64,000 nt of DNA from sequence record MG592456.1; one strand, written 5' to 3'. Made by a program: the position numbers and the translations under genes. Shown here in pieces: positions 28,545 through 57,396 of the stretch; the first letter of the stretch is position 1; every line of letters begins with the position of its first letter. The notes under the pieces are model-generated. The model did no database searches. It had not been told where the DNA came from and saw only the letters and a list, made by a program, of their open reading frames with translations.

Positions 28545-29168
28545 ATGAAAAAAATATTATGTGCTATCGTTGCTGTGCTGTCATTGAGTGCATGTGATCC
28601 AACGACAATTGAGACCACCGACAATATGAAAGTACTTGCTATTAGAGATACGCTGAATGCAACTGAAAAAAAGATGTTGAATCGTTTTATTGTCGAGACG
28701 TCAACACCCGCGCATTATAATGAGCTGTATAGCGCTCTAGCTAGACGTAATATATACGGGAATGATTCGACAAATATTCGCCCTGATTCTGAGTTGCCAT
28801 TCTGCGACGTAATCGAAGAGCTTCTTATTTCAGAGGAAGGATTACGTTCTACATACGCTCACACGCTCACAAATCAATGGAGAGAGCAATACGGGTATAC
28901 CCTTGCTCAATCGTGTGATTATACCCCGAACGTCTCGGAGAAGCTCACTGACGAGGTCACAGAGCCATCAGACACGAACGTTGAGTTGCTAGCGCCAGAA
29001 GAGTATGACAAACTTATTGCCGCAGCGTCGAATTGCGAACGTGCTAAATTGAAGTTAATTGAACTGACGTCTAGCGGAAGGCCGCTAACTGTTCAAGATG
29101 GTAACGATACAACACGTCTTGTTATTGGCTGCAAGATGTACTTACTAGAACGCGAACTACAGAAGTAG
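28545..29168 (+). CDS. Lipoprotein, paralog of 39826-40554
   Basis: Lipobox LSAC; shared PFCDV...L.NQW...YG.TL...C and C.RAK.KL...G.PLT...C.M.LLE.E. Confidence 0.8.
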   Translation: MKKILCAIVAVLSLSACDPTTIETTDNMKVLAIRDTLNATEKKMLNRFIVETSTPAHYNELYSALARRNIYGNDSTNIRPDSELPFCDVIEELLISEEGLRSTYAHTLTNQWREQYGYTLAQSCDYTPNVSEKLTDEVTEPSDTNVELLAPEEYDKLIAAASNCERAKLKLIELTSSGRPLTVQDGNDTTRLVIGCKMYLLERELQK

Positions 29169-29403
29169 TTGTTTGTGTTAGAAAAGTTAATGCGTTATTA
29201 TGCAGAAGTTATATAAAAAGTTAAAAACTTAGATAAAAAGTATATAGTATTTAATAGGTTGTTAAACGAAACGCTACTTTTTGAGCAGTTGACGCACATT
29301 TCACCCTCAAGTGCGTATTTTTACCAAAAATGTGCAGTAGATCACACGTTTTTGCCCGAGTTTTCGATAAATATCGTTTTTGAGACTCACAAGGCAAATA
29401 CAT

Positions 29404-29982
29404 ATGGCATTACCCGGATCAGGCGTCCCTATGACCGCTGCATTAATAAACGTGGAGCTGGGCCGCGATGCTTCAGCGGCATTCAATTTGAACGGTGCTG
29501 AAGAAAGAGCACTAGCAGGAATACCTAGCGGTGCTATCTCGTTGAATGATTTCTACAACAAAAGTTCAAATGTACCAATTCGATCAGGTACGTGCGGGAT
29601 CAATCACTATCAATATCTTTTGTGTATATTCCGCACTGACGGCACAGTTGATTATGATGATGACGAGCATATGCCTCAAACAAATTATTGGATGGGTACT
29701 GCTGCAAATGGTGCTCGTGGTACTTGGGATCAAGCGTTCAAACCGTTGAAAATTCGATTGACGCTCAGAAATTTAAACCACACTACCGTATGGCCTCAGA
29801 TATTGGATGGGAACGGTACTACAACTATGACGACTAGTTCAGGGTGGCATACATTATCATCAGTTGATTCAACTACGGCATGGAGAATTCAAATTCCGGC
29901 CACAAACTTCTCAGGTCGCACTGAATGGGAACTAACGGATGGTGATGGGAATCTCCTGGACATTATAACTCAGACTTATTAA
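29404..29982 (+). CDS. Putative tail-fibre adhesin A (conserved N-terminal anchor + variable C-terminus)
   Basis: MALP.SG..TAA.IN.ELGR...A.F.LNG.EER.LA...SG.IS..DFY.KS shared with 30068 and 33349; GATAAATA at 29366-29373. Confidence 0.6.
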   Translation: MALPGSGVPMTAALINVELGRDASAAFNLNGAEERALAGIPSGAISLNDFYNKSSNVPIRSGTCGINHYQYLLCIFRTDGTVDYDDDEHMPQTNYWMGTAANGARGTWDQAFKPLKIRLTLRNLNHTTVWPQILDGNGTTTMTTSSGWHTLSSVDSTTAWRIQIPATNFSGRTEWELTDGDGNLLDIITQTY

Positions 29983-29987
29983 ACACT

Positions 29988-29995
29988 TATAAATA
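29988..29995 (+). promoter_or_regulatory. T4-type late promoter
   Basis: Exact TATAAATA upstream of 30068. Confidence 0.8.
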
Positions 29996-30067
29996 TCAGC
30001 AAGACGCCGATAGTTTTCGGTAGTAATTTATGTGTTCACGTGAACACCTTAGGAAAAGGATATCCTA

Positions 30068-31306
30068 ATGGCATTACCAATTTCCGGTTTAATAACCGCA
30101 GCTATGATAAATGACGAACTCGGCAGAGCGCAGACCGCCCCTTTTAGTCTGAACGGGGCTGAAGAAAGAGCACTAGCAGGAATACCTAGCGGTGCTATCT
30201 CATTTGCAGATTTCTATGGCAAAAGTAATCTCCCGGATCTGGGATATTTATTTGGATATCGAGATCCAAATTACTCAGAGACGCTACCCGCTCAGAGCAC
30301 TAACATAGGTGATTCATTTAACCATGCATGTATGTCAGAAGATGGTCAGTATTTGCTAGTGGCTGATCGCACCAACAAAAATATTCGATTGAGTGTCCGT
30401 AGTGGCAATACTTGGTCCGTCGTTCAAACTATAACCGATGCTGCATTGGGATATGGTAAAGTTGTGGTATGTGATCGTACAATGACGAATATATGCGTGG
30501 GTTTATATACGGGTGCGGTGACGTCAGCCGATGAATTGAGATTTTACACTCGAAGTGGAAATGCTCTAACGGCGCGAACTACAATCATCCAATCTCCATT
30601 AACGTATCAAGTAGGTAGATCGCTGGCGATGGATCCCGATACGGGTGATGTGGTATCATTTGCTAATGTCGCAGTGGTTTATTATGAACGAAGTGGAACA
30701 TCTTGGTCGCAAAAACAAGTGTTGCGCACCGCGTCGATTGGATTGAACAACGGGGCGATTCGAGGCGATTGGATAGTTACAGGTCATACTTCAGGCCCAG
30801 CACGCATTTATTTGTATAATAGAGCAGGCTCTGGCTCCAACTTCTCTCTTCACAGTACGTTGTACACATCTGCCAACTCATCCAGCCGTGGCCCCTGTGC
30901 AGCGATATCAAGCGACGCGAGTGTGGTTGCATATACGTACACGATTGGTACTGGTGATGTGAGTACATTGAAAATTCAAAGTCGAAGCGGAACAACATAC
31001 ACTGATCAATTCACATTCACGTTACCTGACAATGGACCATTCAATCCAGAACACATGGTAATGAATGAAAGTGGTAATTTCCTACTTATACATCACAATT
31101 CTGAAATTAAAGAATTCAAGAATGAAGGCGGCACATGGTCTCAAACTAAGGTGTATGATACTGCGGATGTATCACCTAACAGTGGGGTAGATGGTCTGGC
31201 GGCCACGTCAACCTGTAACTATATGATGATAGGTAATTACAACGGCATCGTTGATGGCAAACAAACTATCCGCCGTGGTGGTGTTACTATATTCGGGAAC
31301 GCTTAA
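30068..31306 (+). CDS. Putative tail-fibre adhesin B with beta-propeller-like C-terminus
   Basis: Same N-terminus; repeated RSG..W/Y...Q..T blades (FG-GAP-like). Confidence 0.6.
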   Translation: MALPISGLITAAMINDELGRAQTAPFSLNGAEERALAGIPSGAISFADFYGKSNLPDLGYLFGYRDPNYSETLPAQSTNIGDSFNHACMSEDGQYLLVADRTNKNIRLSVRSGNTWSVVQTITDAALGYGKVVVCDRTMTNICVGLYTGAVTSADELRFYTRSGNALTARTTIIQSPLTYQVGRSLAMDPDTGDVVSFANVAVVYYERSGTSWSQKQVLRTASIGLNNGAIRGDWIVTGHTSGPARIYLYNRAGSGSNFSLHSTLYTSANSSSRGPCAAISSDASVVAYTYTIGTGDVSTLKIQSRSGTTYTDQFTFTLPDNGPFNPEHMVMNESGNFLLIHHNSEIKEFKNEGGTWSQTKVYDTADVSPNSGVDGLAATSTCNYMMIGNYNGIVDGKQTIRRGGVTIFGNA

Positions 31307-31881
31307 TGAAATTGATATTATTATCAGGGGGTATGGATTCAACAACGCTGTTGCATCGTTACCCCGATTCAATCGCGCTAACATATCGATATGGACAGAT
31401 AAATGAAGCAGCCGAATTAATGGCTAGCCGTGACATCTGCAAGGAACTTAATGTCAAGCACATTATCCATGACTTGAGTTCTTTCGGAGAACTCGTTTCA
31501 AATCAGACGTCGATCATAAAAGACCAAAACCACGTCGAGACGAAATACGATTATGAAATCCCATATAAAAATTTAGTATTCATCAGTCACGCTCTAGCAG
31601 TTGCGAAGGTAAACAACTGCGACGAGATATCCCTTGGCGTACTCGGCACCGACCAATTAGACGACTGCTCCAGTGAATTTCTAGAAAGTATGAATCGAAT
31701 TTCGGGTGGTATTAAGATAACCTTTCCGTTTCATCAATTAGCAAAGCACCAAATTAGAAGGCATGGTTTTGAATTAGGGGTTGATTATAGCAAGACCGTA
31801 TCTTGCTATTATCAAACTGACTTGTTGGGTGAGCCATGCAATGAATGTTCAGCGTGTATAAATCGAAATTCGGCTATTTAG
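31306..31881 (+). CDS. queC: QueC-family PP-loop ATPase (7-cyano-7-deazaguanine synthase-like)
   Basis: LLSGGMDS, YGQ...E, IPYKNLVFIS.A, DC..EF, TVSCY....PCNECSACINR Zn site; TAATG overlap with adhesin B. Confidence 0.85.
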   Translation: MKLILLSGGMDSTTLLHRYPDSIALTYRYGQINEAAELMASRDICKELNVKHIIHDLSSFGELVSNQTSIIKDQNHVETKYDYEIPYKNLVFISHALAVAKVNNCDEISLGVLGTDQLDDCSSEFLESMNRISGGIKITFPFHQLAKHQIRRHGFELGVDYSKTVSCYYQTDLLGEPCNECSACINRNSAI

Positions 31882-31899
31882 ACTTAAAAGGAATTAACA

Positions 31900-32409
31900 A
31901 TGGAATATGAAAGACTAAGCGTTGAGTTATTCAACACATCAATCGAATTGGCAACTGAATTGTGCGAACGAGTTGAGTCGCATATTAAAGACACGATTAT
32001 ATACGACCCGTGTGCCGATTTAGGCAATATACTCGAAGCGGCTAAGTCTATGGGGTATGAAGTTAAAGGTGGTGATTGCAACCCAAGTCCACATGCGCAA
32101 GTTGAACAAAAAGACTTATTCGACATTGATACCTCTCTCGATGGGTATTCGATCATTACTATTTTCAGATGGGGTGATTTTGAGGGGACAACTGCCGAGC
32201 GCATGATTCGACATCTTGCAGCACTACAGCCCAATTTCATAATGACGACAAAATGTCCGTCTCGTCTGAAAGATATTTCAATCGACGGGTATGAGTTGGT
32301 CTTTCACAATATCATTTCCCATGATCGATACGTTCGGCTAGAGGGTGGAATTATTGACACAGGTCGTACATACAATGCATGTGGGTGGAAACGAATTGAA
32401 CCCGTTTAA
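31900..32409 (+). CDS. Class I SAM-methyltransferase-fold protein with degenerate catalytic motif
   Basis: IYDPCADLGNI (motif I), GGDCNP (II), KDLFD (III); ITIFRW where ITNPPF is expected. Confidence 0.55.
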   Translation: MEYERLSVELFNTSIELATELCERVESHIKDTIIYDPCADLGNILEAAKSMGYEVKGGDCNPSPHAQVEQKDLFDIDTSLDGYSIITIFRWGDFEGTTAERMIRHLAALQPNFIMTTKCPSRLKDISIDGYELVFHNIISHDRYVRLEGGIIDTGRTYNACGWKRIEPV

Positions 32410-32710
32410 ATGTTCAATTGGTGATGACGTATTCTATGGTACATCTGAGTTACATCATTCGGAACTCAACGCAGTTATGAATTATACTGGGGATTGTCGA
32501 GTGTTGATAACCAATGCAGAGCCGTGTCCTATGTGCATGGCTGCTATCATCTGGTCTGGGAAAATTGACACGGTGATTTATAATGTTGACATACCAACCC
32601 TAATGAATCTTGGATGGAAGCAATCATCAATACGAGCCGCTGACGTTATCAAATCATTCAATTCTGACATCGAAATTATCCAAGCCGACATCATGGAGTT
32701 TAAATTGTGA
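32375..32710 (+). CDS. Zn-dependent nucleoside deaminase (CDA/TadA/GuaD superfamily)
   Basis: HSE and NAEPCPMCMAAIIWSG.IDTVIY; start uncertain (32345 GTG or 32375 ATG). Confidence 0.85.
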   Translation: MHVGGNELNPFKCSIGDDVFYGTSELHHSELNAVMNYTGDCRVLITNAEPCPMCMAAIIWSGKIDTVIYNVDIPTLMNLGWKQSSIRAADVIKSFNSDIEIIQADIMEFKL

Positions 32711-33300
32711 TTGAAGTTTTAAATTTATTTGTTACTCACAAGTGCGAGTTATCCTGTTCTTTTTGTTTTAGTAAAAACGCAAGAGAACGTCATCCCATAA
32801 CTAATCGAGATAATATTCGCAGCCATAACATCAATGCTCATAAATCAGGCATTGAGTTGATTCGATACTGTGGCGGAGAGCCGCTAGAAGAGTTTGAGTT
32901 CCTGCGGGAGTTAATATTATCAGCCCCTAGTGGCGTTATGCTGTCAGTGAATACAAATGCTAGAAATCTAACATCAGATATGGTCGAATTCTTTAATGAA
33001 CATGACGTACTATTGCAAATATCTGTTGATGGGTATGATCGAGGCGAGCGTCCGTTGATTAATTTAGATATTGATTTGCTAAACAGCGTTAGTCGACTTG
33101 GGGTTAACCAACTTCTATTTTTCCCGTTCGACGTCATAGCGATAAAAGAAGCACTCCCGACAATCGAATTTTACGAGGTCAGTAACGTCAACTGGAAAAA
33201 TAGTGCTGGCATACCATTAGAAATATCTCACATTTCAGATTTGAAATTGAATGGGATTAATTATTTCACACGCGAGACAACCGTATGGCATCACACATAG
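32707..33300 (+). CDS. Short radical SAM protein (no SPASM domain)
   Basis: CELSCSFC (CxxxCxxC), GGEPL, NTNA, QISVDG. Confidence 0.9.
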   Translation: MIEVLNLFVTHKCELSCSFCFSKNARERHPITNRDNIRSHNINAHKSGIELIRYCGGEPLEEFEFLRELILSAPSGVMLSVNTNARNLTSDMVEFFNEHDVLLQISVDGYDRGERPLINLDIDLLNSVSRLGVNQLLFFPFDVIAIKEALPTIEFYEVSNVNWKNSAGIPLEISHISDLKLNGINYFTRETTVWHHT

Positions 33301-33302
33301 CT

Positions 33303-33310
33303 TATAAATA
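33303..33310 (+). promoter_or_regulatory. T4-type late promoter
   Basis: Exact TATAAATA upstream of 33349. Confidence 0.8.
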
Positions 33311-33348
33311 ACTGTGATATCAATCACGTTAATTTATAGGAGAATTTC

Positions 33349-33876
33349 ATGGCATTACCACCTAGTGGCTCAATGACCGCAGCTATGATAAATGACGAAC
33401 TCGGCAGATCATCAACCGCCGCTTTTAGTATGAACGGGTCTGAAGAAAGAACACTCGCTCAGAAGTCAAGTGGTACGATTTCTATGTACGATTTCTATAA
33501 CAAAAGTTCAGGGAGTGTGATGACAGTTGGATATAATAGCGCATTAGTAGGGGGATCATACGGATATCATTCAGATGGAGGTTCGCTTTCTGTTCCATTT
33601 GGGGCTCTATCTCCCAATACATTTGACGATACCACCGTCACGTCACTATATAGCGGGGGGTTCAACAGAGCGATTCAAATACGTACTAAGTACAACGCAA
33701 ACACAACCGCGATTAGAATTGTTGTTGACGATCGTCCGGATGTCCACGTTGTGACGTATAGCGCCCGGGATGGACAAACGGGGGACATGATTTTCAATGG
33801 GACCGTATTCGACTCATTGTATGATTACTTGGCAAGTAACTCAAGCGTTAAAGTCGTATTCTCTCGCGTATTATAA
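33349..33876 (+). CDS. Putative tail-fibre adhesin C
   Basis: Same N-terminus; unrelated beta-rich C-terminus (MTVG...GY...FG.LSP). Confidence 0.6.
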   Translation: MALPPSGSMTAAMINDELGRSSTAAFSMNGSEERTLAQKSSGTISMYDFYNKSSGSVMTVGYNSALVGGSYGYHSDGGSLSVPFGALSPNTFDDTTVTSLYSGGFNRAIQIRTKYNANTTAIRIVVDDRPDVHVVTYSARDGQTGDMIFNGTVFDSLYDYLASNSSVKVVFSRVL

Positions 33877-33895
33877 CATAAACAAGGATAACTCC

Positions 33896-34168
33896 ATGAA
33901 TATTTTTAGTAGAATTTTACTGGCAATTAATCAATCAGCATGTTTAATCTTCACCGGTCGAAACGACATGACCTTGTCGGGACGTTCTTATATTAAACAC
34001 AAAGAACAAGGTAAATCGAATTGGTACAATTTCGTCAATTTCTTATTCTTTTGGCAAGAAGATCATTGTCGTGATGCTATGATCTGGGAATATCGAGCGG
34101 CTCGTACCATGACGGAGAGATACGCTGATTTGTATAAAGAAGCGCATGACGATAAGTTCGGGGAGTGA
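33896..34168 (+). CDS. Hypothetical protein of a family often next to tail-fibre genes
   Basis: LLAINQ...TLSGRS...FLFFWQEDHC; family recalled, not searched. Confidence 0.55.
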   Translation: MNIFSRILLAINQSACLIFTGRNDMTLSGRSYIKHKEQGKSNWYNFVNFLFFWQEDHCRDAMIWEYRAARTMTERYADLYKEAHDDKFGE

Positions 34169-34172
34169 TTTT

Positions 34173-34201
34173 AAGCGAAAGTCGTTGACTTTCGCTTTTT
34201 T
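34173..34201 (+). terminator. Intrinsic terminator containing a TTGACT hexamer
   Basis: AAGCGAAAGTC-gtt-GACTTTCGCTT followed by a T-run. Confidence 0.8.
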
Positions 34202-34244
34202 GTATGTGAAACTTTATCTAAATCACATTACCTGAGGGAAAATT

Positions 34245-34628
34245 ATGAAACGTCAACTAAAAATCGCAATTCTTGCCGCAACGCTCCTGTCTTCTAGTGC
34301 ATTATCTGCATCACCTGCATCTGAACCCGCACCTTCAGCTCTGAATGCAACTCTGGGTCAGGTTCTTGCGCTCACACAATTCTGTTCTGACAATGAGTTT
34401 GAGATCACTCGCTACATGAAAATTAAGTATGATGCCGCTATCGTCTACCTCTATGCTCAAAAAATCGATTATGATCGAATCGAAATCGAGCGTGCGAAAT
34501 CGAAAAACATGAACTTGATGAATGCAGCCCTTGCCAATCATTTAGTACCTGAAGCAAAATCCGCGTGTGCTGACTTACTTCCGGACGTTATTGAAACACT
34601 GAAAATATACGACACGCTCGGGCATTAA
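34245..34628 (+). CDS. Secreted hypothetical protein
   Basis: Signal peptide MKRQLKIAILAATLLSSSALSA; Cys pair. Confidence 0.7.
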   Translation: MKRQLKIAILAATLLSSSALSASPASEPAPSALNATLGQVLALTQFCSDNEFEITRYMKIKYDAAIVYLYAQKIDYDRIEIERAKSKNMNLMNAALANHLVPEAKSACADLLPDVIETLKIYDTLGH

Positions 34629-34660
34629 ATAACCCATATACTAAACGATAGGGAATTATA

Positions 34661-35263
34661 ATGTTTGCGCCTTTAACAGAAAGATTTGTAAATGCGGTCG
34701 GTGATGGCGATCGAGCGGTGAAAGAAAAATACGCGGATCAAGTGTGGGAGTTGCTGCAACGCTCATATCAGAAGATCGGTGGTATCAAAGGCTCTGGTTT
34801 TGAAAATAAGCAGTCTATGATCGAGAATATACCGATGTGGAAAATGGTTGTTCAATCTGGGGTAGTGCGTGCCGTCATCTTGTACAAAGATAAAGGCGGC
34901 CGTAAATCAGTAGCGATGGGGTCGGACGGCTCTGACTATGCAAAGAAACACTTGCCTTCAATTATCTCGGCTGACATTACACGTTCATTCGGTGAGAAAT
35001 CGAAAGCCGCACTCGGTGCAGTTCTGAAAATCATACCGTGGGATATCATTCAGCATTATATCAAGACCCCTGAGCAGGCGCAGAAAGTTTTGGGCAAAGC
35101 AACTATACCAATCAAGTTTGTTGATAAATCTGAGTGGCCGGAAGATGCTCAAGCTACTATTGCTAAATTCCCGCATTTGATTGATTATGGTTATTTGCGC
35201 AGTCTTAAAGGTAAGATGGCCTTTAAAGTACTTATCGGATCACCGGGTAATGAAATTAAATAG
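34661..35263 (+). CDS. Conserved hypothetical protein, probably late, possible GNAT-like fold
   Basis: VWELLQRSY..IGGIKGSGF...IP.WK...AVILYKD..GRK; ATTAAATA at 34624-34631. Confidence 0.55.
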   Translation: MFAPLTERFVNAVGDGDRAVKEKYADQVWELLQRSYQKIGGIKGSGFENKQSMIENIPMWKMVVQSGVVRAVILYKDKGGRKSVAMGSDGSDYAKKHLPSIISADITRSFGEKSKAALGAVLKIIPWDIIQHYIKTPEQAQKVLGKATIPIKFVDKSEWPEDAQATIAKFPHLIDYGYLRSLKGKMAFKVLIGSPGNEIK

Positions 35264-35322
35264 CTTGACATTCTAATGTAGAGCTGTCAGAATACAGTCT
35301 GAATTGATTAATAGAGAACGAT

Positions 35323-35886
35323 ATGAACATTTTATATTTGCACGGCTGGGGCAGTCATTACGACCCTACTAATGAAAAAATTGTTGAACTATCAAAGATT
35401 GGTACAGTTTCTGGATTCACAATTGATTATTGTGTTGACGCGACCGTAATTGAGTCATTACTTGTAAAACACGTCATTAACGCGAAAATCGATTTGATTG
35501 TTGGTACTAGTCTTGGTGGGTTTTGGGCTGCTAGCGTTGGTTCAGTAACTGGTGTTCCATTCGTCTCTATCAATCCAGCATTAGATCCAAGCACTTCATT
35601 AAATCACTATATCGGGAATGGCATCACATATTCAGGTAATGAATACTTGCTGACTCAAGACGTAATCGATACATATAAATTATATGATTTCGACTTGTAC
35701 GGCTGTGGATTGATCTTGCTTGATAAAGCAGACAAAGTTGTCGATAACGTTGCGACTCAAGCCAAGATGGACGGTCATTACGAAGTTGAAATGTTCGAAG
35801 GTGGTTCTCATCGATTCGAACATATGAAAGAAAGTCTTCCGTTGATCAAGTATCATTACGGGATATCTCAAATTGTTTACAACTAA
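35323..35886 (+). CDS. YqiA/YcfP-family alpha/beta hydrolase
   Basis: LYLHGWGS, GTSLGG nucleophile elbow, INPA, LLD..D, GGSHRF. Confidence 0.9.
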   Translation: MNILYLHGWGSHYDPTNEKIVELSKIGTVSGFTIDYCVDATVIESLLVKHVINAKIDLIVGTSLGGFWAASVGSVTGVPFVSINPALDPSTSLNHYIGNGITYSGNEYLLTQDVIDTYKLYDFDLYGCGLILLDKADKVVDNVATQAKMDGHYEVEMFEGGSHRFEHMKESLPLIKYHYGISQIVYN

Positions 35887-35964
35887 AGTTTAACACGTTA
35901 GAAAATCGAGCTATAATAGCCCACGAGCAATAACGCTCATTAAGCATAAAATGGGAGCCATACA

Positions 35965-37455
35965 ATGCTAACTTTCAAAAAAAATCTACCTGCATCAACA
36001 GACAGCTACAAAGTTTCTCACTGGTTACAATTCATGTCAGGATTGCAATTCAGCCAATATTACGTCGAAAGCCGGGGTGGCAAATTTGACAAGGTAATGG
36101 TCGATGGTATGGCATACATGTGCCGTATTCTAGAGCAAGGGGTAACAAGTGGCGACGTGAAATATGCAAAACGTCTATTCCAAAAGCACTTTGGTTCAGA
36201 AGTCTTCAACACTACGGGTTGGGACACTATCGTTAACGAGCTTGATGGCAAGTTACCGATTCGAATTCGCGCTATACGTGAAGGCGAAGTGATTCCAGTA
36301 AAAACCCCATTGTTGGTGATTGAAAACACCGATCCTCGTTTCGGCTGGCTACCCGGCTATCTCGAAACGTTTATCTTACGTGCAATTTGGTACCCGACGA
36401 CTGTAGCAACCGTTTCATTCGAAGTGAAGAAAATCATCCGTAGTTTCATGAAAAAAACTGTAAACGATGATCAAATCGCTGGCGGTGAGCCGTTCAAGCT
36501 GCATGACTTCGGATCTCGTGGCGTATCAAGCGGTGAATCTGCATCTATTGGTGGCGGTTCTCACTTGAAAAACTTCTGGGGCACTGACAACGTCGAAGCA
36601 TTAATGGCTGTCGAACAAATCTATGCGCCTGACGTTGAAGAATTCATTGCGGGATTCTCTATCCCTGCACGTGAGCATTCAACAACGACAATCTACACTG
36701 AAATGCACGAAGACGCAGCATTCTTGAACAGCATCGAGCAGTTTGGCAGCGGGCTATATGCTTGCGTGATGGACAGCTATAATTACGACGCGGCAATGGA
36801 ACGTATCTCGACCGGTCGTTTCAAAGAACTTATCATTGCGAAAGGCGGTACATTTGTTGCTCGTCCTGACTCTGGTGTTCCTGTAGATGTAGTAATGCGC
36901 GGTCTTGAGATTCTAGGCAAGAATGTTGGCTATACTGTCAACGATAAAGGGTATAAAGTTCTTCACCCTAGCTTCAGAATCATTCAAGGTGATGGTGTTA
37001 ACATCGAAGAAATCCAACGAATTCTTTCTTTCATGGAAAGCAAGAAATGGTCGGCTGAAAACATTGCATTCGGAATGGGTGGTGGATTGCTACAACAATC
37101 TGACCGTGATACTCAACGATTCGCGATGAAGATGTCTGCTGCAATCGTCAATGGCGAATACGTTGCTGTGTTCAAAATGCCAAAGACTGATCCGTCAAAA
37201 GCGTCAAAGTCTGGGTTCTTAGATGTGATTGCAACAAATCCAGATAATCCAAACCCAGCAGAGCGTGGTTATTTCACTGTTAGCAGTGAAGACTACGACA
37301 ACCGAGTTCATTCACAAAGCATTATGCGTACAATCTTTGAGAATGGCGTCACTGTCGAGAACTTCGACCTTGATTACTTCAATGAGGCTCGCAGATTGTC
37401 AGATGTACAGGCGAACTTCACTAACTGTAACGAGTGGAAAGTTAAAACTGACTAG
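35965..37455 (+). CDS. nadV: Nicotinamide phosphoribosyltransferase
   Basis: TDSYKVSH, HDFGSRG, IPAREHS, RPDSG, QGDGV, FGMGGGLLQ..DRDT. Confidence 0.95.
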   Translation: MLTFKKNLPASTDSYKVSHWLQFMSGLQFSQYYVESRGGKFDKVMVDGMAYMCRILEQGVTSGDVKYAKRLFQKHFGSEVFNTTGWDTIVNELDGKLPIRIRAIREGEVIPVKTPLLVIENTDPRFGWLPGYLETFILRAIWYPTTVATVSFEVKKIIRSFMKKTVNDDQIAGGEPFKLHDFGSRGVSSGESASIGGGSHLKNFWGTDNVEALMAVEQIYAPDVEEFIAGFSIPAREHSTTTIYTEMHEDAAFLNSIEQFGSGLYACVMDSYNYDAAMERISTGRFKELIIAKGGTFVARPDSGVPVDVVMRGLEILGKNVGYTVNDKGYKVLHPSFRIIQGDGVNIEEIQRILSFMESKKWSAENIAFGMGGGLLQQSDRDTQRFAMKMSAAIVNGEYVAVFKMPKTDPSKASKSGFLDVIATNPDNPNPAERGYFTVSSEDYDNRVHSQSIMRTIFENGVTVENFDLDYFNEARRLSDVQANFTNCNEWKVKTD

Positions 37456-46271: not shown

Positions 46272-47392
46272 TGAAAACAATTTTTAACACTGACAAGGTT
46301 GATCACTTAGATCAACCGCTATTCTTGGGTCAAGACCCGAATATCTCTCGTTTCGAGACAACAAAACACTCAGTTTTCGAAAAACTGACTGAAAAGCAGC
46401 TTTCATTTTTCTGGCGACCTGAAGAAGTCGACTTGACCGCCGATGCGCAAGAATTTAATCGTATGCCAGAGCATTGGCAGCACGTTTTCACGCAGAACTT
46501 GAAATATCAAACGCTGTTAGATTCAGTTCAGGGCAGAGCACCGAACGTCGCGCTTCTGCCTATCTGTAGTGATATTTCTCTTGAGAACTGGATCACGACA
46601 TGGGCTTTCAGTGAAACTATTCACAGCCGTTCGTACACGCACATAATGCGAAATCTATATACAGATCCTAGTGCAGTTTTTGATGATATCATGCTTGATG
46701 ATAATATCATGAGCCGAGCACAGGCAGTCACGAAGCATTATGACCGATTGATTGCTGAAACACAGAAGCTTGATCACTTACGCACGCTAGACATTGACGA
46801 AGCTATCCCGCTTATGCAAGAAACTGCCGTCAAAGAAGCACTTTATTTGTGTATGCACGCAATTAACGCGCTAGAAGCTATTCGCTTTTATGTTTCGTTT
46901 GCGTGTACGTTCAACTTTGCCGAGCAAGGGTTCATGGAAGGCAACGCCAAAGTAATGAAGCTGATTGCACGTGATGAACAGTTGCACTTGAAAGGCACAC
47001 AAGCGATTATCTCACTTTGGCAGAACTACAAAGACGACCCTGACATGGCTCGGATTTCTGAGGCATTACAGCCGCAAGCTGAACAAATCTTCATCGATGT
47101 AGCTGAACAAGAAAAAGACTGGGCAACGACATTATTTGCTAAAGGCACAGTACCTGGGTTAAACACTGAAATTCTATGCGATTACGTTGAATACTTGACG
47201 AATACACGCATGGCATCAGCGGGGTTGAATAGCCCATATGAAAAACGCGCTCATCCGTTACCATGGATTCGAAAGTGGTTGAACAGTGATGCAGTGCAAG
47301 TAGCCCCACAAGAAGTAGAAGTGAGTTCGTATCTTGTTGGTCAAATAAACTCAACAGTACGTCCTGAATTTTTGAAAACATTAGAGGTGTAA
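46271..47392 (+). CDS. nrdB: Ribonucleotide reductase class Ia beta subunit
   Basis: FFWRPEEVD, LDSVQGR, ETIHSRSY, LEAIRFY, IARDEQLH, VAPQEVE.SSY. Confidence 0.98.
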   Translation: MKTIFNTDKVDHLDQPLFLGQDPNISRFETTKHSVFEKLTEKQLSFFWRPEEVDLTADAQEFNRMPEHWQHVFTQNLKYQTLLDSVQGRAPNVALLPICSDISLENWITTWAFSETIHSRSYTHIMRNLYTDPSAVFDDIMLDDNIMSRAQAVTKHYDRLIAETQKLDHLRTLDIDEAIPLMQETAVKEALYLCMHAINALEAIRFYVSFACTFNFAEQGFMEGNAKVMKLIARDEQLHLKGTQAIISLWQNYKDDPDMARISEALQPQAEQIFIDVAEQEKDWATTLFAKGTVPGLNTEILCDYVEYLTNTRMASAGLNSPYEKRAHPLPWIRKWLNSDAVQVAPQEVEVSSYLVGQINSTVRPEFLKTLEV

Positions 47393-47393
47393 T

Positions 47394-47687
47394 TTGCTAG
47401 AAATATTTGGTTGGGATGAAAGTGATTTTCGATGTGTCCCATGCTTAAAAGCAAAACGTTTGGCAGAATCTCGCGGGTTGATATTCGATTTCATCCCGTT
47501 AGCCAAAGAAAAAATCACAGAACAACACGCTCAGAATCGCAGTGACTTGGAAACAAGAATGATCGCTAACGGTAAAGCGTTAGAAACGCTACCGCAAGTG
47601 TTCTTCAATGGGAACTTGATTGGCGGGTTTGATGACTTCAAAGCCAGTATCCATGAATTAGAAAAGCGTAGATGGGAAAATAAATAA
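47394..47687 (+). CDS. nrdC: Glutaredoxin/thioredoxin (T4 NrdC-like)
   Basis: CVPC..AKRL, TLPQVF, IGGFDD; TTG start. Confidence 0.9.
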   Translation: MLEIFGWDESDFRCVPCLKAKRLAESRGLIFDFIPLAKEKITEQHAQNRSDLETRMIANGKALETLPQVFFNGNLIGGFDDFKASIHELEKRRWENK

Positions 47688-47690
47688 ACA

Positions 47691-47727
47691 AAAAGGGTTG
47701 ACTTCGGTCAGCCCTTTTTCATATAAT
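47691..47727 (+). terminator. Terminator overlapping a promoter (TTGACT...TATAAT)
   Basis: GGGTTGAC-TTCG-GTCAGCCC followed by a T-run; TATAAT at 47722-47727. Confidence 0.8.
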
Positions 47728-47750
47728 GTCGATTCTAAAAGGAGGGTTAT

Positions 47751-48320
47751 ATGAAACGACTGTTTGTTATATTTGCATTACTCATCATGAGTTCGACTGC
47801 GACTGCGGGCATTCAAGAATGTAAATTCAAAAGTGAATTTAGTGATATGCAGTGGTATAATATACGCGATGTGTTTGCTCAGGCATGGTCTGCTGATCTA
47901 AGTTGGACAATGTCTGCGATTATAATCGCGGAATCAAGTGCAGGGTCATACACAATCAATCACCGAACCCAAGATTACGGTATTATGCAGAATAATATCA
48001 AAACAGCCACGACGAGACTCAAAGAATGGGAAAAGGATGGTCGGGATTTTGGGCCATATGATCTCGATAGTCAAGAAGATGTTCGTGGATTATTGCTGTT
48101 GAATCGTGATATCAGCATCAAACTTGCAATAGAAGAAATCAATTTCTGGAAGAAAGTGCGTGGAGAGCATCAGTGGAATGAGATTTTTGCTAGCTATAAT
48201 GGGGGGTATTATCACGATACACCGCGTCATGAGCGAAGTGAATCGTACTCTCAGAAAATCGTATCAATTATCCGCAAGCTAAAACCTTGCGCATCACTAC
48301 TAACAAAAGGACTATTCTAA
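47751..48320 (+). CDS. vs.1: Secreted SLT-like transglycosylase (T4 Vs.1-like)
   Basis: Signal peptide; AIIIAESSAG, YGIMQN, E..FW, ASYNGG...Y..K. Confidence 0.8.
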   Translation: MKRLFVIFALLIMSSTATAGIQECKFKSEFSDMQWYNIRDVFAQAWSADLSWTMSAIIIAESSAGSYTINHRTQDYGIMQNNIKTATTRLKEWEKDGRDFGPYDLDSQEDVRGLLLLNRDISIKLAIEEINFWKKVRGEHQWNEIFASYNGGYYHDTPRHERSESYSQKIVSIIRKLKPCASLLTKGLF

Positions 48321-48493
48321 TGTCATATTTATTTTCGGGGCTCATTGTATACATGAATCCATGGCTACTGCGCTTGTTTTGCATTATTGGGTGGCATACT
48401 TGGGTATACAAAAAAGGACAGCATCGCCAGTGTAAGCACTGCAAGAAGAGTCAAAGCCAAATTAGAGTCGGAAATCACCAAGATTGGCAATAA
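48320..48493 (+). CDS. Small Cys/His Zn-binding protein
   Basis: LFC.IGWHTW...CKHC. Confidence 0.6.
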   Translation: MSYLFSGLIVYMNPWLLRLFCIIGWHTWVYKKGQHRQCKHCKKSQSQIRVGNHQDWQ

Positions 48494-48517
48494 ATGCAAA
48501 AAATTTCTCAAAAGTGG

Positions 48518-48593
48518 TTGCACTTGAATTCGATAATGCCTATTATAGCTTCATCGAAACGACATCGACAATTACTAAGAGAACATTAATATG
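48518..48593 (+). promoter_or_regulatory. Early promoter/leader module copy 14
   Basis: TTGCAC-17-TATTAT then AGCTTCATCGAAAC...AGAGAACATTAATATG. Confidence 0.85.
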
Positions 48594-49598
48594 CAAGCAA
48601 TCATTCAAAACGCACTTTACCGCAACACTGAAATTAACGGCACATTTCAATTAATCGAAAAATGCTGGAATAGCGCAGATGCTGCTCCGAAAACTGCACG
48701 CATGAAAATCATGTTAGATGGTAAGATTCGCACAATTCGTGTGAATAAAGAAGACGTGCAGTATGTTGATGAAATGTCACCAATGTCTAACCCAGTTGAA
48801 GCATTTGTTGCACCTGCTGTAACTGAAACGAAAGACGATATTGCAAAACGCATCACAGAATCGTTCGAAGCACTTGACATCTTCACGACGGGCGTTATAG
48901 GGTCTCACGTGCAGTCAATGATTGTTTCTGGCGCAGCGGGTGTTGGTAAGACTTACAACATAGACCGAGATTTACAGAAAGCCGCAGCTCAAGGTGTGAT
49001 TAGCAAGTATGTACGCCTAGCAGGTCGCTGTACTGGTGTTGGTCTGTTCACCAAACTATGGGAATGTCGAGCTGCTGGTTCAGTGCTACTTCTAGATGAT
49101 GTTGACGTGTTCAAAGATGAAGACCAAGTCAACTTGCTTAAAGCTGCGTGTGATACGGGCGAAGAGCGTTGGGTTTCTTGGTTATCTGCGTCAAGCTACT
49201 TCGAAGAAAATGGAATTGATCAAGAATTTGAATTCAAAGGCACGATCGTGTTCATTACAAACCGTGACTTTGACCGCGAAATTGATGCAAACACCAAGAT
49301 GTCTGCTCACTTTTCAGCGCTTATTTCACGTACCATCTACCTTGATTTGGGTGTTCACACGAAAGAAGAGATCATGATTCGTATCAATCAGGTCATAGCG
49401 AATACTAACATGATGCAAGACATCGGATTGAATGACTCACAAATCGAGGTGCTGATGACATGGTTAGACGATAATTTATTCGCACTGCGCTGTGTTTCAC
49501 TTCGAACGTGTTTACACATCGCAAATATGATGCTAACATCGCCGACTAAATGGGAAATGCTTGCCAAGTCGACTATGTTTTCACAGAAACGTAAATAG
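48591..49598 (+). CDS. AAA+ ATPase with a small N-terminal domain
   Basis: Walker A GAAGVGKT, Walker B LLLDDVD, sensor VFITN, SR. Confidence 0.9.
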   Translation: MQAIIQNALYRNTEINGTFQLIEKCWNSADAAPKTARMKIMLDGKIRTIRVNKEDVQYVDEMSPMSNPVEAFVAPAVTETKDDIAKRITESFEALDIFTTGVIGSHVQSMIVSGAAGVGKTYNIDRDLQKAAAQGVISKYVRLAGRCTGVGLFTKLWECRAAGSVLLLDDVDVFKDEDQVNLLKAACDTGEERWVSWLSASSYFEENGIDQEFEFKGTIVFITNRDFDREIDANTKMSAHFSALISRTIYLDLGVHTKEEIMIRINQVIANTNMMQDIGLNDSQIEVLMTWLDDNLFALRCVSLRTCLHIANMMLTSPTKWEMLAKSTMFSQKRK

Positions 49599-49607
49599 AC
49601 TCTTTAC

Positions 49608-49628
49608 GGGGCTTTCGAGCCCCTTTTT
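49608..49628 (+). terminator. Intrinsic terminator
   Basis: GGGGCT-TTCG-AGCCCC followed by a T-run. Confidence 0.85.
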
Positions 49629-49642
49629 ATATTGAGGAATAT

Positions 49643-50929
49643 ATGCAACGTACATTAACAGAAATTATTAACGACGAAGCGTTAGAATACGCTATGTATA
49701 CCATCGAAAATCGTGCAATGGCTAACGGAATCGACGGACTGAAGCCGGTTCAGCGCTTCGTGCTTTACAACGTCTTAAAAGACGCTCGTACATCGTTTGA
49801 TAAAGTTGCGGCACTTGGTAGCTCCGTGTCTAAAATCGGCTACAACCACGGCGAGACGTCGGCACAAGACGCATTAGCCCTTATGGCTGCGGAATGGAAA
49901 ACGAATTATCCGATTGTTCGTGGTCGCGGGAATTTCGGTTCGAGAATGGTTCAAGAATCTGCAAGCGCTCGTTACGTATATGCCAAACTGCACGAAGATT
50001 TCGACAAGATGTTCAAAGACATTGAAATGTCACCTGAACACAAAGACGTCGAGCACATACCACCGCAGTTTTACGTCCCTGTATTGCCGATGATTCTAAT
50101 GAACGGTGTTACGGGTATTGCAACTGGATTCGCGTGCAACATTTTACCGCATGATCCGACGTGGGTTAAACGAGCCGTTGCTGAATATCTCAGTGGCAAA
50201 GAAATCAGCGAACCAGTAGTTCAATTTCCTGCGTTCGATGGTAAAGTCGTTAAGACAGATCACGGCAAGTATGATCAAGTTGGGAAAGTTGAAATCTCAG
50301 GGCTGACGGCTGTCGTCACTGAAATCCCGACCGCATTCGACCATAGCAAATATTGTGCAATGCTTGACAAGCTAGTCGATGATGCTAAAATTAGCAGCTA
50401 CGTTGATGAAACAAGCGAGACGTTTCAATTTCGCGTGCGGTTCCGTCGTGGTGCTAAAATGCAACCAGAAAACGTCGTGAAAGTATTGAAATTGAAAAGC
50501 AGCTTTACGCAAAACTTAAACGTTATCGACGAGAACTACAGAATTCGTCATTTTGACGACGTGAGAGACATTGTGAAGTGGTTTGTCGACTATAGACTAT
50601 CATTCTTACCCAAACGTATTAAAGCCGCGCAGAAGAGCACTAGCAAGCGTGTATCGCTAGCGTCTGCAAAGGTTTCGTTTATTAAAGACGTTGTTGAATC
50701 AAAAATCGTGTTATTTGGCAAAACCCGTGCAGTTGTATCGAACGAATTGAAAGAAATCGAGCTATATAAACCGTACGTCACTGAGTTGCTTTCGATGTCA
50801 GTCGACAAAATGACTGATGATGAAATCGCACGACTTGAAAAAGACGCGATTGCAGCAGCATCCGAACTTGAGTATTGGAATTCAACGTCACCGAAAAAAG
50901 AGTTTATCAAAGACATAAAGGCACTATAA
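49643..50929 (+). CDS. 52: DNA topoisomerase II medium subunit (T4 gp52-like)
   Basis: YAMYTIENRA...DGLKPVQR, YNHGETS, GRGNFGS, ASARY (catalytic Tyr), NGVTGIATGF. Confidence 0.95.
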   Translation: MQRTLTEIINDEALEYAMYTIENRAMANGIDGLKPVQRFVLYNVLKDARTSFDKVAALGSSVSKIGYNHGETSAQDALALMAAEWKTNYPIVRGRGNFGSRMVQESASARYVYAKLHEDFDKMFKDIEMSPEHKDVEHIPPQFYVPVLPMILMNGVTGIATGFACNILPHDPTWVKRAVAEYLSGKEISEPVVQFPAFDGKVVKTDHGKYDQVGKVEISGLTAVVTEIPTAFDHSKYCAMLDKLVDDAKISSYVDETSETFQFRVRFRRGAKMQPENVVKVLKLKSSFTQNLNVIDENYRIRHFDDVRDIVKWFVDYRLSFLPKRIKAAQKSTSKRVSLASAKVSFIKDVVESKIVLFGKTRAVVSNELKEIELYKPYVTELLSMSVDKMTDDEIARLEKDAIAAASELEYWNSTSPKKEFIKDIKAL

Positions 50930-51171
50930 TGAATATCATCGTTGACAACGGCTTAATACAAGCGAATGATCAAGCAACACTATTTGGTGACGAAGACGTC
51001 ATTCACGTCGAGTCGACGGTGACTCTTACCGAGCTTGTGTGTAATCTTGGTCTATACAAATCAAAATCCCAAGCAAGACAATCTGGTCGAGTCGGTTCAA
51101 TTCCGACTGGCTGGTCTGTATTCAAAGGCAATAAGAAAACACACTTGTACGTGTGGAATCCAACAGAATAG
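50929..51171 (+). CDS. Small S4-like RNA-binding protein
   Basis: LTELVCNLGLYKSKSQARQ.G...IP.GW resembles the S4/TyrRS C-terminal motif. Confidence 0.55.
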   Translation: MNIIVDNGLIQANDQATLFGDEDVIHVESTVTLTELVCNLGLYKSKSQARQSGRVGSIPTGWSVFKGNKKTHLYVWNPTE

Positions 51172-51178
51172 GTTAATT

Positions 51179-52030
51179 ATGCAAGCAAAATGGACGGAAA
51201 TGTTTTACAGTATTCAAGGCGAGGGAAGATACACTGGTCAAGCTAGTTTATTCTTTCGTTTTTGGGGCTGTAACCTTGAATGTCATGGCTTCGGTCAAGA
51301 AGATCCGACAGATCCCGACACTTATGTGCTCGATTTTAAAGAATTCGACCCGAAATCTGAGGGAATTACATCAGTTGAAGACTTACCCGTCTTCCAACGC
51401 GGATGTGATTCAAGCTACACATGGGCTAAGAAGTATTCACATCTTGCAATGAAAACTGAAATCTCTGACGTGTGCGAAATGATGCTCGATAAATTGCCGA
51501 ATCGCAAATGGGGTAAAGTGCATTGGGTTATCACGGGCGGTGAGCCGATGATGAATCAGCCTCAAATCGTAGCTATGATGGAATACTTCCAGTCAATTGG
51601 TAATATGCCCGCGGGTGTGACAATAGAAACAAACGGCACTCAGCCTCTGAAAATGGATTGGTTGTATGTATTCCCAGAGCTGAATTTCAGTGTATCGTTC
51701 AAGCTGTTTAATGTCACAGGTGAGTTGAACGAAAAGGCAATTAAGCCTGAAATTGTCAATTCATATGCTCAAGTGGGTAACGTGTGGTTAAAGCCAGTTG
51801 TCGTTGATACAGAAGCGTGCTGGAATGAGCTTGATATGTTGCTTGCTCAATATACATCACAACGAAGACTCGGCAACGTTGACGTTTATGTGATGCCGTG
51901 TGGGGCGACTCAAGAAGAACAAGAGCAAGACGGTTACATGAAATCAATTGCTAACAAAGCATTGGCTCGTGGGTATAATGTTTCTGCACGTATGCATGTG
52001 TGGATTTACGGGAATGCAGTCGGCACGTAG
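51179..52030 (+). CDS. queE: 7-carboxy-7-deazaguanine synthase QueE (radical SAM, insertion variant)
   Basis: EMFYSIQGEG..TG..SLF.RF.GCNL.C...GCDS, ITGGEP, IETNGT, R.HV.IYGN. Confidence 0.9.
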   Translation: MQAKWTEMFYSIQGEGRYTGQASLFFRFWGCNLECHGFGQEDPTDPDTYVLDFKEFDPKSEGITSVEDLPVFQRGCDSSYTWAKKYSHLAMKTEISDVCEMMLDKLPNRKWGKVHWVITGGEPMMNQPQIVAMMEYFQSIGNMPAGVTIETNGTQPLKMDWLYVFPELNFSVSFKLFNVTGELNEKAIKPEIVNSYAQVGNVWLKPVVVDTEACWNELDMLLAQYTSQRRLGNVDVYVMPCGATQEEQEQDGYMKSIANKALARGYNVSARMHVWIYGNAVGT

Positions 52031-52056
52031 TGTGCCATTTTATAAGTGAGGGTTAA

Positions 52057-52308
52057 ATGATTATATTTGGACACGTTGTTGGTATGTTAGGTATGATTCT
52101 GATCTGCCTAGCCTTCTGGTTTGTCACAACCGAACGTTACGGGCCGAAGCACAACACATACTTGTGGACAAACATGACTGGTGCGATTCTGTTGACGATT
52201 AGCTTGCTAATCAACTTCAATTTAGGTAGCTTTATGATTGAGTTATTCTGGATTTGGATCAGCGGCACCGCGTTGTGGAAGAACTACAGATTGAAAAAAA
52301 CTTCATAA
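52057..52308 (+). CDS. Small 3-TM membrane protein (CBU_0592-like)
   Basis: G.LG..LI..AF...Y...N..GA.LL.ISL...FN...F.IE.FW..IS. Confidence 0.65.
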   Translation: MIIFGHVVGMLGMILICLAFWFVTTERYGPKHNTYLWTNMTGAILLTISLLINFNLGSFMIELFWIWISGTALWKNYRLKKTS

Positions 52309-52376
52309 AGTAGTTGAAGTAGTCATGAGTTCGTGTATAATTACACATGAATTCAATGACTACTACGGATAACATA

Positions 52377-53382: not shown

Positions 53383-53409
53383 TGTAACGAATATCGCATA
53401 TTAAGTTGT

Positions 53410-53439
53410 AAAAGCCTCGACTAGATTCGAGGCTTTTTT
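53410..53439 (+). terminator. Intrinsic terminator
   Basis: AAGCCTCGA-ctagat-TCGAGGCTT followed by a T-run. Confidence 0.85.
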
Positions 53440-53474
53440 AGGTCTGTACTAAATATAGTAAACAAGGGGTACAC

Positions 53475-54602: not shown

Positions 54603-54645
54603 ATAACAGGGAGCACTTTTGCTCCCTTTTTTAGGACTCAAAATC

Positions 54646-55128: not shown

Positions 55129-55190
55129 TTTAGAACAGTTGTTTTTGACGCTATTATATATCCGTACTCACACAATAAAAGGTCTAATAT

Positions 55191-57094: not shown

Positions 57095-57103
57095 GACTTT
57101 ATA

Positions 57104-57388: not shown

Positions 57389-57396
57389 GGAATCAC

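Follow-up and report, generated by a model that had tools for sequence, protein, structure and literature searches.

A four-enzyme cassette with a divergent QueC-family protein beside MALP-domain genes of Vibrio phage 1.081.O

Vibrio phage 1.081.O._10N.286.52.C2 (MG592456.1), a 239-kb KVP40-like Schizotequatrovirus of the Nahant collection with Shewanella as its recorded host, carries four tightly packed open reading frames (ORFs) at positions 31306–33300 of the 64,000-nucleotide stretch analysed here, which is referred to as the window (window coordinate = MG592456.1 record coordinate minus 124000). Sequence identity between the region and this record is 99.8%. These 1995 bases are filled by the genes of a QueC-like protein, a protein with a methyltransferase fold (ORF 2), a deaminase and a radical S-adenosylmethionine (SAM) enzyme, in this order, and are flanked on both sides by genes of paralogous proteins with an N-terminal MALP domain, adhesin B upstream and adhesin C downstream. 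Quite possibly, the four genes represent a rare conserved module that is functionally tied to the upstream MALP-domain protein, a putative tail-fibre accessory protein. The explanation tentatively favoured here is late expression of a pathway that synthesizes a small group for attachment to this MALP protein or to another virion component. A more specific proposal is more doubtful: with a QueC-family ligase and the three other enzymes, the phage would decorate its own accessory protein for receptor binding with an unusual, for instance nucleobase-like, group.

The QueC-like protein and its partner enzymes

Pfam, motif and fold searches recovered the four ORFs at 31306–33300 as described in an earlier note on this stretch, which was made from the sequence alone. 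Codon statistics place the annotated frame far above the other two frames in all four ORFs; the codon scores do not reach those of core genes and resemble those of the adhesin genes on either side. The junctions also read as the earlier note had claimed: the stop codon of the adhesin B gene overlaps the start codon of the QueC-like gene (TAATG), and both of the last two gene pairs overlap, ORF 2 and the deaminase gene by 35–65 nucleotides (nt), varying with the deaminase start codon, and the deaminase and radical SAM genes in the sequence GTGA. Between the QueC-like gene and ORF 2, 18 nt with an AAGGA ribosome-binding site are found. A reading of ORF 2 and the deaminase as one frameshifted gene was rejected, since a stop codon closes the deaminase frame just before its first start codon. 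This reading is also contradicted by the homologs in Ferrimonas, which are separate genes with a 16-nt overlap, and by a metagenome in which ORF 2 is followed by a radical SAM gene.

The first gene of the cassette (31306–31881, + strand) encodes a 191-residue PP-loop ATP pyrophosphatase of a divergent subfamily of the QueC family (Pfam QueC, E-value 3.6e-36). The SGGMDS PP-loop (residues 7–12) is retained and invariant in the alignments, as are the zinc cysteines Cys167, Cys178, Cys181 and Cys184, with a first spacing of 10 residues and not the canonical 8. Several loops are shortened and the C-terminal tail is absent. By mutagenesis, Arg99, Tyr131 and Tyr35 (E. coli numbering) were found to be essential in QueC (2026 QueC family survey, PMC13329287), and in the structure of Cap9 the arginine and tyrosine equivalent to Arg99 and Tyr131 stack on the deazaguanine. 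In the cassette protein, the arginine is changed to lysine (Lys88), the tyrosine to leucine (Leu118), a proline to aspartate (Asp119) and a histidine to asparagine (Asn33). The canonical VPxRN motif is replaced by IPYKN, with lysine in all three cassette members (from the window, Ferrimonas balearica and a metagenome) and arginine in 21 of 21 canonical QueCs aligned. At the position of YPDC, LDDC is found in the window protein and (M/I)WDA in its two relatives, and the essential aromatic residue is missing from it. Where canonical QueCs have YGQxH the cassette protein has YGQIN, which breaks the YxQxHxxE pattern; the His-to-Asn change is common to the two cassette QueCs with a known N-terminal part.

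The core 7-deazaguanine pathway of the phage is encoded outside the window, in a cluster of FolE, a DpdA2-type transglycosylase, a QueF-like protein, QueC and an amidotransferase (Gat). With 169.2 bits, the core QueC exceeds the cut-off of the NCBIfam equivalog model TIGR00364 (150.3 bits), whereas the cassette QueC (101.7 bits) and its Ferrimonas homolog (104.5 bits) fall below it, and the identity between the two phage proteins is 30%. The claim of the earlier note that the cassette is not the ordinary que cluster is thus borne out. Its nearest sequence relatives are nevertheless canonical QueCs with 34–39% identity, none above 39% in a word-based protein search, and among PDB entries the canonical QueC 3bl5 is matched with an E-value of 1.6e-12 compared with 0.033 for Cap9. 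In a neighbour-joining tree, the three cassette QueCs form a clade of their own apart from 21 canonical QueCs in 186 of 200 bootstraps, a support that is approximate owing to saturated distances. The cassette copy is not the only QueC of the genome, and in the tree it separates from canonical QueCs. Nor is it surrounded by queD and queE, its neighbours being the MALP genes and those of the methyltransferase, the deaminase and a radical SAM enzyme unlike QueE.

Another part of the earlier note did not hold. The gene at 51179–52030 (+ strand), which is located beside the topoisomerase gene and belongs to the genus-wide 7-deazaguanine pathway, had been called a canonical QueE. Its 283-residue radical SAM product reaches 49.9 bits with the best QueE model, compared with a cut-off of 240, and some of the matching segments lie at the N-terminus and others in the middle of the protein. 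It is QueE-like at most, and a role as synthase of 7-carboxy-7-deazaguanine (CDG) is assigned by context, not by score.

ORF 2 (31900–32409, + strand; 169 residues) has no Pfam match and a weak match to a PHROG DNA-methyltransferase family (1.5e-6). An AlphaFold model built with two homologs (pLDDT 81, pTM 0.80) was matched by Foldseek to ChlM, PH1948, Erm38, KsgA and Trm11 (E-values 1e-6 to 1e-4, TM-scores of about 0.6) and to viral methyltransferases in BFVD, and the independent BFVD model of ORF 2 agrees with it (TM-score 0.84). Invariant in the family are IYDPCA..G, Asp59, TI.RWG and GYELV, TI.RWG standing where amino-methyltransferases carry (D/N)PP(Y/F). As judged from these models, ORF 2 adopts a minimal class I SAM-dependent methyltransferase fold, and SAM binding itself is predicted.

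The third gene (32354–32710, + strand) encodes a minimal zinc deaminase of the cytidine deaminase (CDA) fold, 118 residues long from the annotated TTG and 111–121 residues depending on the start, with alternatives at GTG 32345 and ATG 32375. The Pfam model dCMP_cyt_deam_1 (PF00383) matches with 32.7 bits (cut-off 25), and the zinc motifs HSE and PCPMC are invariant with Ferrimonas. An assignment as TadA was rejected, with TadA scores of 21–57 bits in the family compared with a cut-off of 150; the protein groups with free-base and nucleoside deaminases (guanine deaminase, NE0047). Its best cellular relatives (42–47% identity) are located in FolE-QueD-deaminase operons of Planctomycetaceae, and preQ0 genes lie within 7 kb at 14 of 80 deaminase loci. 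To a modest degree, this points to a 2-amino-4-oxo ring, as in deazaguanines or pterins, as the substrate of the deaminase lineage. The FolE-QueD-deaminase order occurs in Planctomycetaceae and Fuerstiella, and more distant relatives in Pirellulales show the order deaminase-QueC-QueE. Taken by themselves, these non-TadA deaminases of Planctomycetota suggest that 7-deazaguanine or pterin metabolism includes a deaminase step that has not been described.

The last gene (32707–33300, + strand) encodes a minimal radical SAM enzyme of 197 residues (Pfam Radical_SAM, PF04055, 39.2 bits with a cut-off of 29.5). The cluster motif CELSCSFC (CxxxCxxC; Cys13, Cys17 and Cys20) and the GGEP motif are conserved with Ferrimonas, and in neither protein was a SPASM, twitch or auxiliary-cluster domain detected. 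No curated subfamily fits, the scores for viperin, MoaA, PapB and other maturases being far below the cut-offs. The best family score is obtained with viperin (49.9 bits; cut-off 180), and hhalign aligns the protein to prokaryotic viperin with a probability of 98% over 82 columns. However, the Ferrimonas homolog ranks MoaA first, so that no specific family is indicated, and the family matches are confined to the common N-terminal core with the cluster and SAM-binding site (residues ~3–112). The last ~45 residues are poorly conserved, and a single-sequence AlphaFold model reached a pLDDT of 40. A word-based search with the protein returned only itself, a tblastn search of 50,697 phage records matched only Vibrio phage 1.081.O, and a profile of the two homologs found nothing else closer than an E-value of 3e-10.

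To our knowledge, the QueC family was long thought to be limited to queuosine and deazaguanine synthesis, and only recently the Cap9 and QatC branches were shown to join a nucleobase to protein, both in bacterial anti-phage defence. Cap9 of type IV cyclic oligonucleotide-based anti-phage signalling systems (CBASS) is encoded beside the modified CD-NTase and joins a carboxylate to a protein amine with ATP. It is a small QueC-family enzyme like the cassette QueC (~185 versus 191 residues), and both carry LxSGGxDS, the Y.Q(x)5E spacing (Y29-G-Q-(5)-E37), PF(x)4K (P141-F-(4)-K147) and a zinc cysteine cluster, of which the Y.Q spacing does not discriminate because some canonical QueCs share it. However, the base-stacking arginine and tyrosine of Cap9 (RN, YxDC) correspond to lysine and leucine in the cassette protein (KN, LDDC), the CE(x)6CxxCxxCxD motif of Cap9 is absent, with C(x)10C found instead, and the similarity to the solved Cap9 is marginal (E-value 0.033). 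Furthermore, the cassette is encoded by a phage, belongs to no defence system and has a radical SAM enzyme, a methyltransferase and a deaminase as partners; no CD-NTase or TGT-like Cap10 was found among the ten ORFs of 30068–35886 or at the Ferrimonas locus, and no effector lies nearby. QatC also belongs to the QueC family; its active site is remodelled, preQ0 synthesis has been lost, and its substrate gene (QatB) lies immediately upstream. It differs from the 191-residue cassette QueC by its length of ~400 residues, its N- and C-terminal extensions and its own motifs, and the cassette has neither a QatA ATPase, QatB or QatD nuclease as neighbour nor a PADLOC match to QatC.

The canonical preQ0 route and the deazaguanine pathways of phages (FolE, QueD, QueE, QueC and DpdA, with Gat-QueC, QueF, ArcS, DpdL, DpdM and DpdN) share with the cassette the combination of a QueC-family protein and a radical SAM enzyme, and the full core pathway is encoded elsewhere in the same genome. 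In contrast, the cassette QueC lies below the equivalog cut-off and lacks Arg99, Tyr131 and His39, its radical SAM partner is not QueE-like, and the cassette methyltransferase has the class I fold and not the DUF3109 fold of DpdM. In addition, the cassette lacks a transglycosylase and is adhesin-linked and putatively late, whereas the pathway genes are situated in the early nucleotide-metabolism region. The cassette protein could be placed neither with canonical QueC nor with Cap9 or QatC. As judged from its sequence, it is a second, non-canonical QueC of this phage, for which the most fitting description is a fourth branch of the family, associated with phages.

Two further systems bear comparison through the partner enzymes. 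Diphthamide synthesis employs the radical SAM-type enzyme Dph1/2, the methyltransferase Dph5 and the ATP-dependent amidase Dph6, and Dph2 lacks CxxxCxxC. A radical SAM step, SAM methylation and a PP-loop ATP-dependent reaction of a carboxylate on a protein side chain would recur in the cassette as an analogy of logic only; no sequence relationship between the cassette and the diphthamide enzymes was found, and the cassette radical SAM protein, unlike Dph2, possesses CxxxCxxC. From viperin, MoaA and the SPASM proteins it differs in that their substrate-binding C-terminal parts are missing.

Recurrence beside MALP-domain genes and predicted late transcription

Three MALP-domain proteins are encoded around the cassette, all on the + strand: adhesin A (29404–29982, 192 residues) with the shared N-terminal and a unique C-terminal domain, adhesin B (30068–31306, 412 residues) with a repeat-rich C-terminal part, and adhesin C (33349–33876, 175 residues). 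Protein A shares 67–72% identity with B and C, restricted to the N-terminal domain of ~55 residues, and the C-terminal parts are all different. The N-terminal module (MA[LI]P..G, I..E.G, SG.I...F..K) corresponds to phrog_26817 and to no curated family. It was aligned in the three window paralogs, in phages nt-1, Pasto and fHe-Yen9-04 and in Ferrimonas; searches with the adhesin and the domain gave no Pfam match for the domain and nothing meaningful in the PDB. In Rhizobium phage Pasto and Yersinia phage fHe-Yen9-04 the MALP gene begins exactly at the stop codon of a tail fibre gene, and the same arrangement of tail fibre gene and MALP gene is found in several Erwinia, Serratia, Xanthomonas and Vibrio phages. 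In phage nt-1, a single full-length adhesin B homolog with the annotation FG-GAP repeat protein is encoded at the syntenic position directly upstream of the NAMPT gene. From gene position and promoter, it is a reasonable inference that the MALP proteins are tail-fibre accessory proteins. The label "adhesin" of the earlier note is likewise putative and derives from the position of such genes next to tail fibre genes.

When 1.84 billion representative proteins were searched in full by HMMER with ORF 2 as query, two true relatives only were returned, one from Ferrimonas balearica and one from a metagenome; two repetitive proteins in the output were disregarded on account of incoherent Pfam matches. 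The Ferrimonas instance is located on the 1.86-Mb contig JAHVJK010000001.1, in a 20-kb stretch (125848–146417) of the bacterial chromosome with a prophage-like structural module. Here, two SU10-type adaptors, a 592-residue protein, a PB4-type spike and a tail fibre with a Peptidase_S74 chaperone domain are followed by a 189-residue MALP protein and then by QueC (206 residues), the radical SAM protein (229 residues), the ORF 2 homolog (189 residues) and the deaminase (121 residues). Further downstream are virion-protein PHROG families 610, 611, 596, 594 and 601 and a 4109-residue LPD39 polyvalent protein. The 189-residue protein upstream of QueC begins with MALPESPNPISLSQIQTEFG, and it was the sole match of a hidden Markov model (HMM) of six other MALP domains among 24,105 six-frame ORF segments from all fetched loci (E-value 1.8e-5). 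Identities to the window proteins amount to 31% for QueC, 44% for the radical SAM protein, 41% for the methyltransferase and 48% for the deaminase. Invariant between the diverged homologs are SGGxDS, the four zinc cysteines, CxxxCxxC, GGEP, H.E/PCPMC and DPCA, which leaves the cofactor motifs of the cassette intact. The enzymes are unusually short, as the earlier note had remarked, and because the Ferrimonas homologs are equally small, shortness is a family trait and not a sign of decay.

A partial third instance is present on two 1-kb metagenome contigs of 38.5% GC. The three instances have GC contents of 41%, 60% and 38.5% and differ in internal order, with QueC-methyltransferase-deaminase-radical SAM in the window, QueC-radical SAM-methyltransferase-deaminase in Ferrimonas and QueC-methyltransferase-radical SAM in the metagenome; the linkage has therefore survived rearrangement. 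In both complete instances, which belong to two unrelated elements, the QueC gene stands directly behind a MALP-domain gene and overlaps its end. This junction has been kept despite divergence to ~30–48% identity and the reshuffling of the other three genes. The check proposed in the earlier note, whether the cassette travels with MALP-type adhesins, gave a positive outcome in the sole other complete instance.

The reverse does not apply. Of 50,697 phage records, 22 encode MALP-type proteins, and at 67 further MALP loci from IMG/VR no cassette homolog was found within 8 kb. A MALP gene hence accompanies the cassette in both testable cases, but the cassette rarely accompanies a MALP gene, as would be expected if it were an optional accessory to the adhesin. 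Owing to the rarity of MALP genes, adjacency by chance is unlikely. The cassette DNA matched no other record than Vibrio phage 1.081.O among the 50,697 phage genomes, and no further cassette came to light when viral contigs were scanned with ORF 2, the radical SAM protein and alignments, and species-representative genomes with the ORF 2 alignment. One weak metagenome match and one viral radical SAM match had no other cassette member beside them and were not counted.

Phages from IMG/VR sample 3300045988 that encode both QueC and a deaminase were rejected as cassette carriers; their QueC belongs to an ordinary QueC-QueD-QueE-FolE cluster, 7 kb away from a deaminase of the replication module. 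These related uncultured phages (contigs of 45–71 kb) combine the QueC-QueD-QueE-FolE operon with a sliding-clamp-like gene, the gene of the 161-residue deaminase and a RecA-like gene. They are probably deazaguanine-modifying phages unrelated to the cassette.

The T4-type late-promoter motif TATAAATA matches perfectly at 29988–29995 (+ strand), the site named in the earlier note, and lies 80 nt before the ATG of adhesin B. A second perfect copy, which that note had not used, lies at 33303–33310 (+ strand), 2 nt past the radical SAM stop codon and 46 nt before the ATG of adhesin C. A related motif with one mismatch, GATAAATA, was read at 29366–29373 (+ strand), 30 nt before the start of adhesin A. 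The four copies of TATAAATA in the 64-kb window (22010, 29988, 33303 and 58383) are no more than expected by chance. In the genome as a whole, however, each of the 21 perfect copies has an ORF of at least 60 residues on the same strand within the next 150 nt. Among these ORFs are the genes of tail sheath, scaffold, major capsid and vertex proteins, which makes the motif a credible late-promoter marker in this phage. As a side result, it flags unannotated hypothetical genes as probably late (record positions 13063, 36873, 59714 and 146046).

Between 29988 and 33300, two weak 5-bp hairpins and no strong terminator were found. The first strong intrinsic-terminator-like hairpin, with 11 pairs and a T run, is located at 34173–34197 (+ strand) and is the likely end of the late transcription unit. 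In combination with the marker status of TATAAATA, this makes late co-transcription of the cassette with adhesin B plausible, promoter activity being predicted. A sigma-70-like site with a 9/12 match at 29221–29248 qualifies the claim of late expression made in the earlier note. The sigma-70 scan gave no more matches than in shuffled sequence, and a scan for T4-type MotA-box middle promoters yielded one chance-level match far away.

A possible virion modification pathway and its rivals

In the modification pathway proposed here, late transcription of the cassette would start at the TATAAATA promoter of adhesin B, and its translation would be coupled to that of adhesin B. The QueC-family enzyme would adenylate a carboxylate with ATP and transfer it, once activated, to an amine of the adhesin or of another virion protein. 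Construction or tailoring of the group to be attached would fall to the radical SAM enzyme, the methyltransferase and the deaminase; this group might stem from a 7-deazapurine or CDG supplied by the FolE, QueD and QueE genes of the phage. A substrate gene followed directly by the gene of a QueC-family ligase has been reported for QatB-QatC and for CD-NTase-Cap9, and by analogy the arrangement of MALP and QueC genes matches both.

Several observations weigh against this pathway. Phages that lack the cassette conserve the MALP N-terminus just as well, and since the cassette is missing from 67 of 67 other MALP loci, it is no general requirement of the adhesin. The target of Cap9 and QatC is an N-terminal glycine, whereas MALP proteins would expose alanine. 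Moreover, with the deazaguanine-stacking residues changed, the substrate may not be a deazapurine. Cargo genes commonly land behind tail fibre genes. The hosts of the elements with the two complete instances, Shewanella and Ferrimonas, are related, and both instances may descend from one adhesin-plus-cassette unit, in which case the effective sample size would be one. With the sigma-70-like site upstream, early read-through transcription of the cassette could occur. Finally, any modification of a virion protein or of DNA is hypothetical, as is the purine-derived group suggested in the earlier note. In summary, the late modification pathway put forward in the earlier note is partly supported: a non-canonical QueC, the MALP linkage and the late promoter speak for it, while the identity of the adhesin follows from position and the association from two instances.

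An unlikely alternative is that the cassette forms an extra branch of 7-deazaguanine nucleic-acid modification, which makes a new base from CDG, preQ0 or a relative by deamination, methylation or radical chemistry and leaves its insertion into DNA or the many tRNAs of the phage to the core DpdA-like transglycosylase. The core preQ0/DpdA2 pathway is present throughout the genus, and relatives carry dPreQ0, dG+ or dPreQ1 in their DNA. The closest relatives of the cassette QueC are canonical (34–39% identity; 1.6e-12 for 3bl5 versus 0.033 for Cap9), and those of the deaminase are found not with TadA but in FolE-QueD-deaminase or deaminase-QueC-QueE operons of Planctomycetota. However, residues needed for preQ0 synthesis are changed in all three cassette QueCs, the cassette contributes no transglycosylase, and the published phage deazaguanine pathways feature neither a deaminase nor a radical SAM enzyme besides QueE. 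An extra branch would also leave unexplained why the cassette stands behind a MALP gene in structural or late units of two unrelated elements.

It is similarly improbable that the cassette is cargo for a soluble nucleotide- or nucleobase-like metabolite, serving for instance counter-defence or host manipulation, and came to lie near fibre genes through tolerance of insertions. This would fit the variability of the locus upstream of the NAMPT gene and the missing cassette in nt-1, and all four folds are typical of small-molecule pathways. The weak similarities of the radical SAM protein include the nucleotide-acting viperin and MoaA, and the deaminase belongs with free-base and nucleoside deaminases. 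Yet the Ferrimonas cassette occupies the middle of a structural module, between fibre/adhesin and virion-protein genes and not at the module end, and the cassette in the window stays with MALP genes even outside a tail module. In both instances the QueC start overlaps the adhesin stop, and PADLOC gives a generic QueC model and weak matches to the viperin N-terminus but no defence system.

That the four ORFs are functionless, decaying remnants of longer captured genes is highly improbable, for although all four are shorter than typical family members, with codon-usage scores below those of core genes and a poorly conserved stretch of ~45 residues at the radical SAM C-terminus, the Ferrimonas homologs are just as small (206, 229, 189 and 121 residues) and keep all catalytic and cofactor motifs at 31–48% identity, the 1995 bases are coding with compact junctions, and the annotated frame gives a clear coding signal compared with the other two.

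Besides Cap9 and QatC, the cassette QueC represents a third divergent branch of its family, on the phage side. It is part of a four-enzyme module whose genes are linked, in two mobile elements of very different kinds, to those of putative tail-fibre accessory proteins. No such cassette is mentioned in the 2026 QueC family survey, in the phage deazaguanine literature or in the full-text searches, and the QueC, radical SAM and methyltransferase subfamilies of the cassette have almost no relatives in billions of database proteins. If the proposed decoration of a receptor-binding accessory protein is true, it would be the first virus-encoded counterpart of protein deazaguanylation and a new virion protein modification that could alter receptor recognition. 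Modification of the adhesin would add an enzymatic layer to the building or tuning of phage host recognition and would give four small, tractable enzyme families their first functional context. Even with DNA or a metabolite as target, the pathway would be one that has not been described.

Neighbouring genes

The cassette sits in an accessory small-gene region of the window, outside any tail module. The locus upstream of the NAMPT (nadV) gene varies among relatives, as seen by comparing window positions 28545–37455 with positions 47154–58182 of nt-1. Phage nt-1 has one adhesin homolog and no cassette at this locus; in Vibrio phage 1.081.O it comprises, besides the cassette and the three MALP paralogs, four more small genes, which encode a phrog_3342 protein, a signal-peptide protein, a 200-residue protein and a UPF0227 esterase-like protein. 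For the first of these, a program-called ORF (33797–34168) overlaps the end of adhesin C by 80 nt, and the GenBank gene is shorter (33896–34168). Its product matches phrog_3342, a family of unknown function, and the strong terminator lies directly 3' of the gene.

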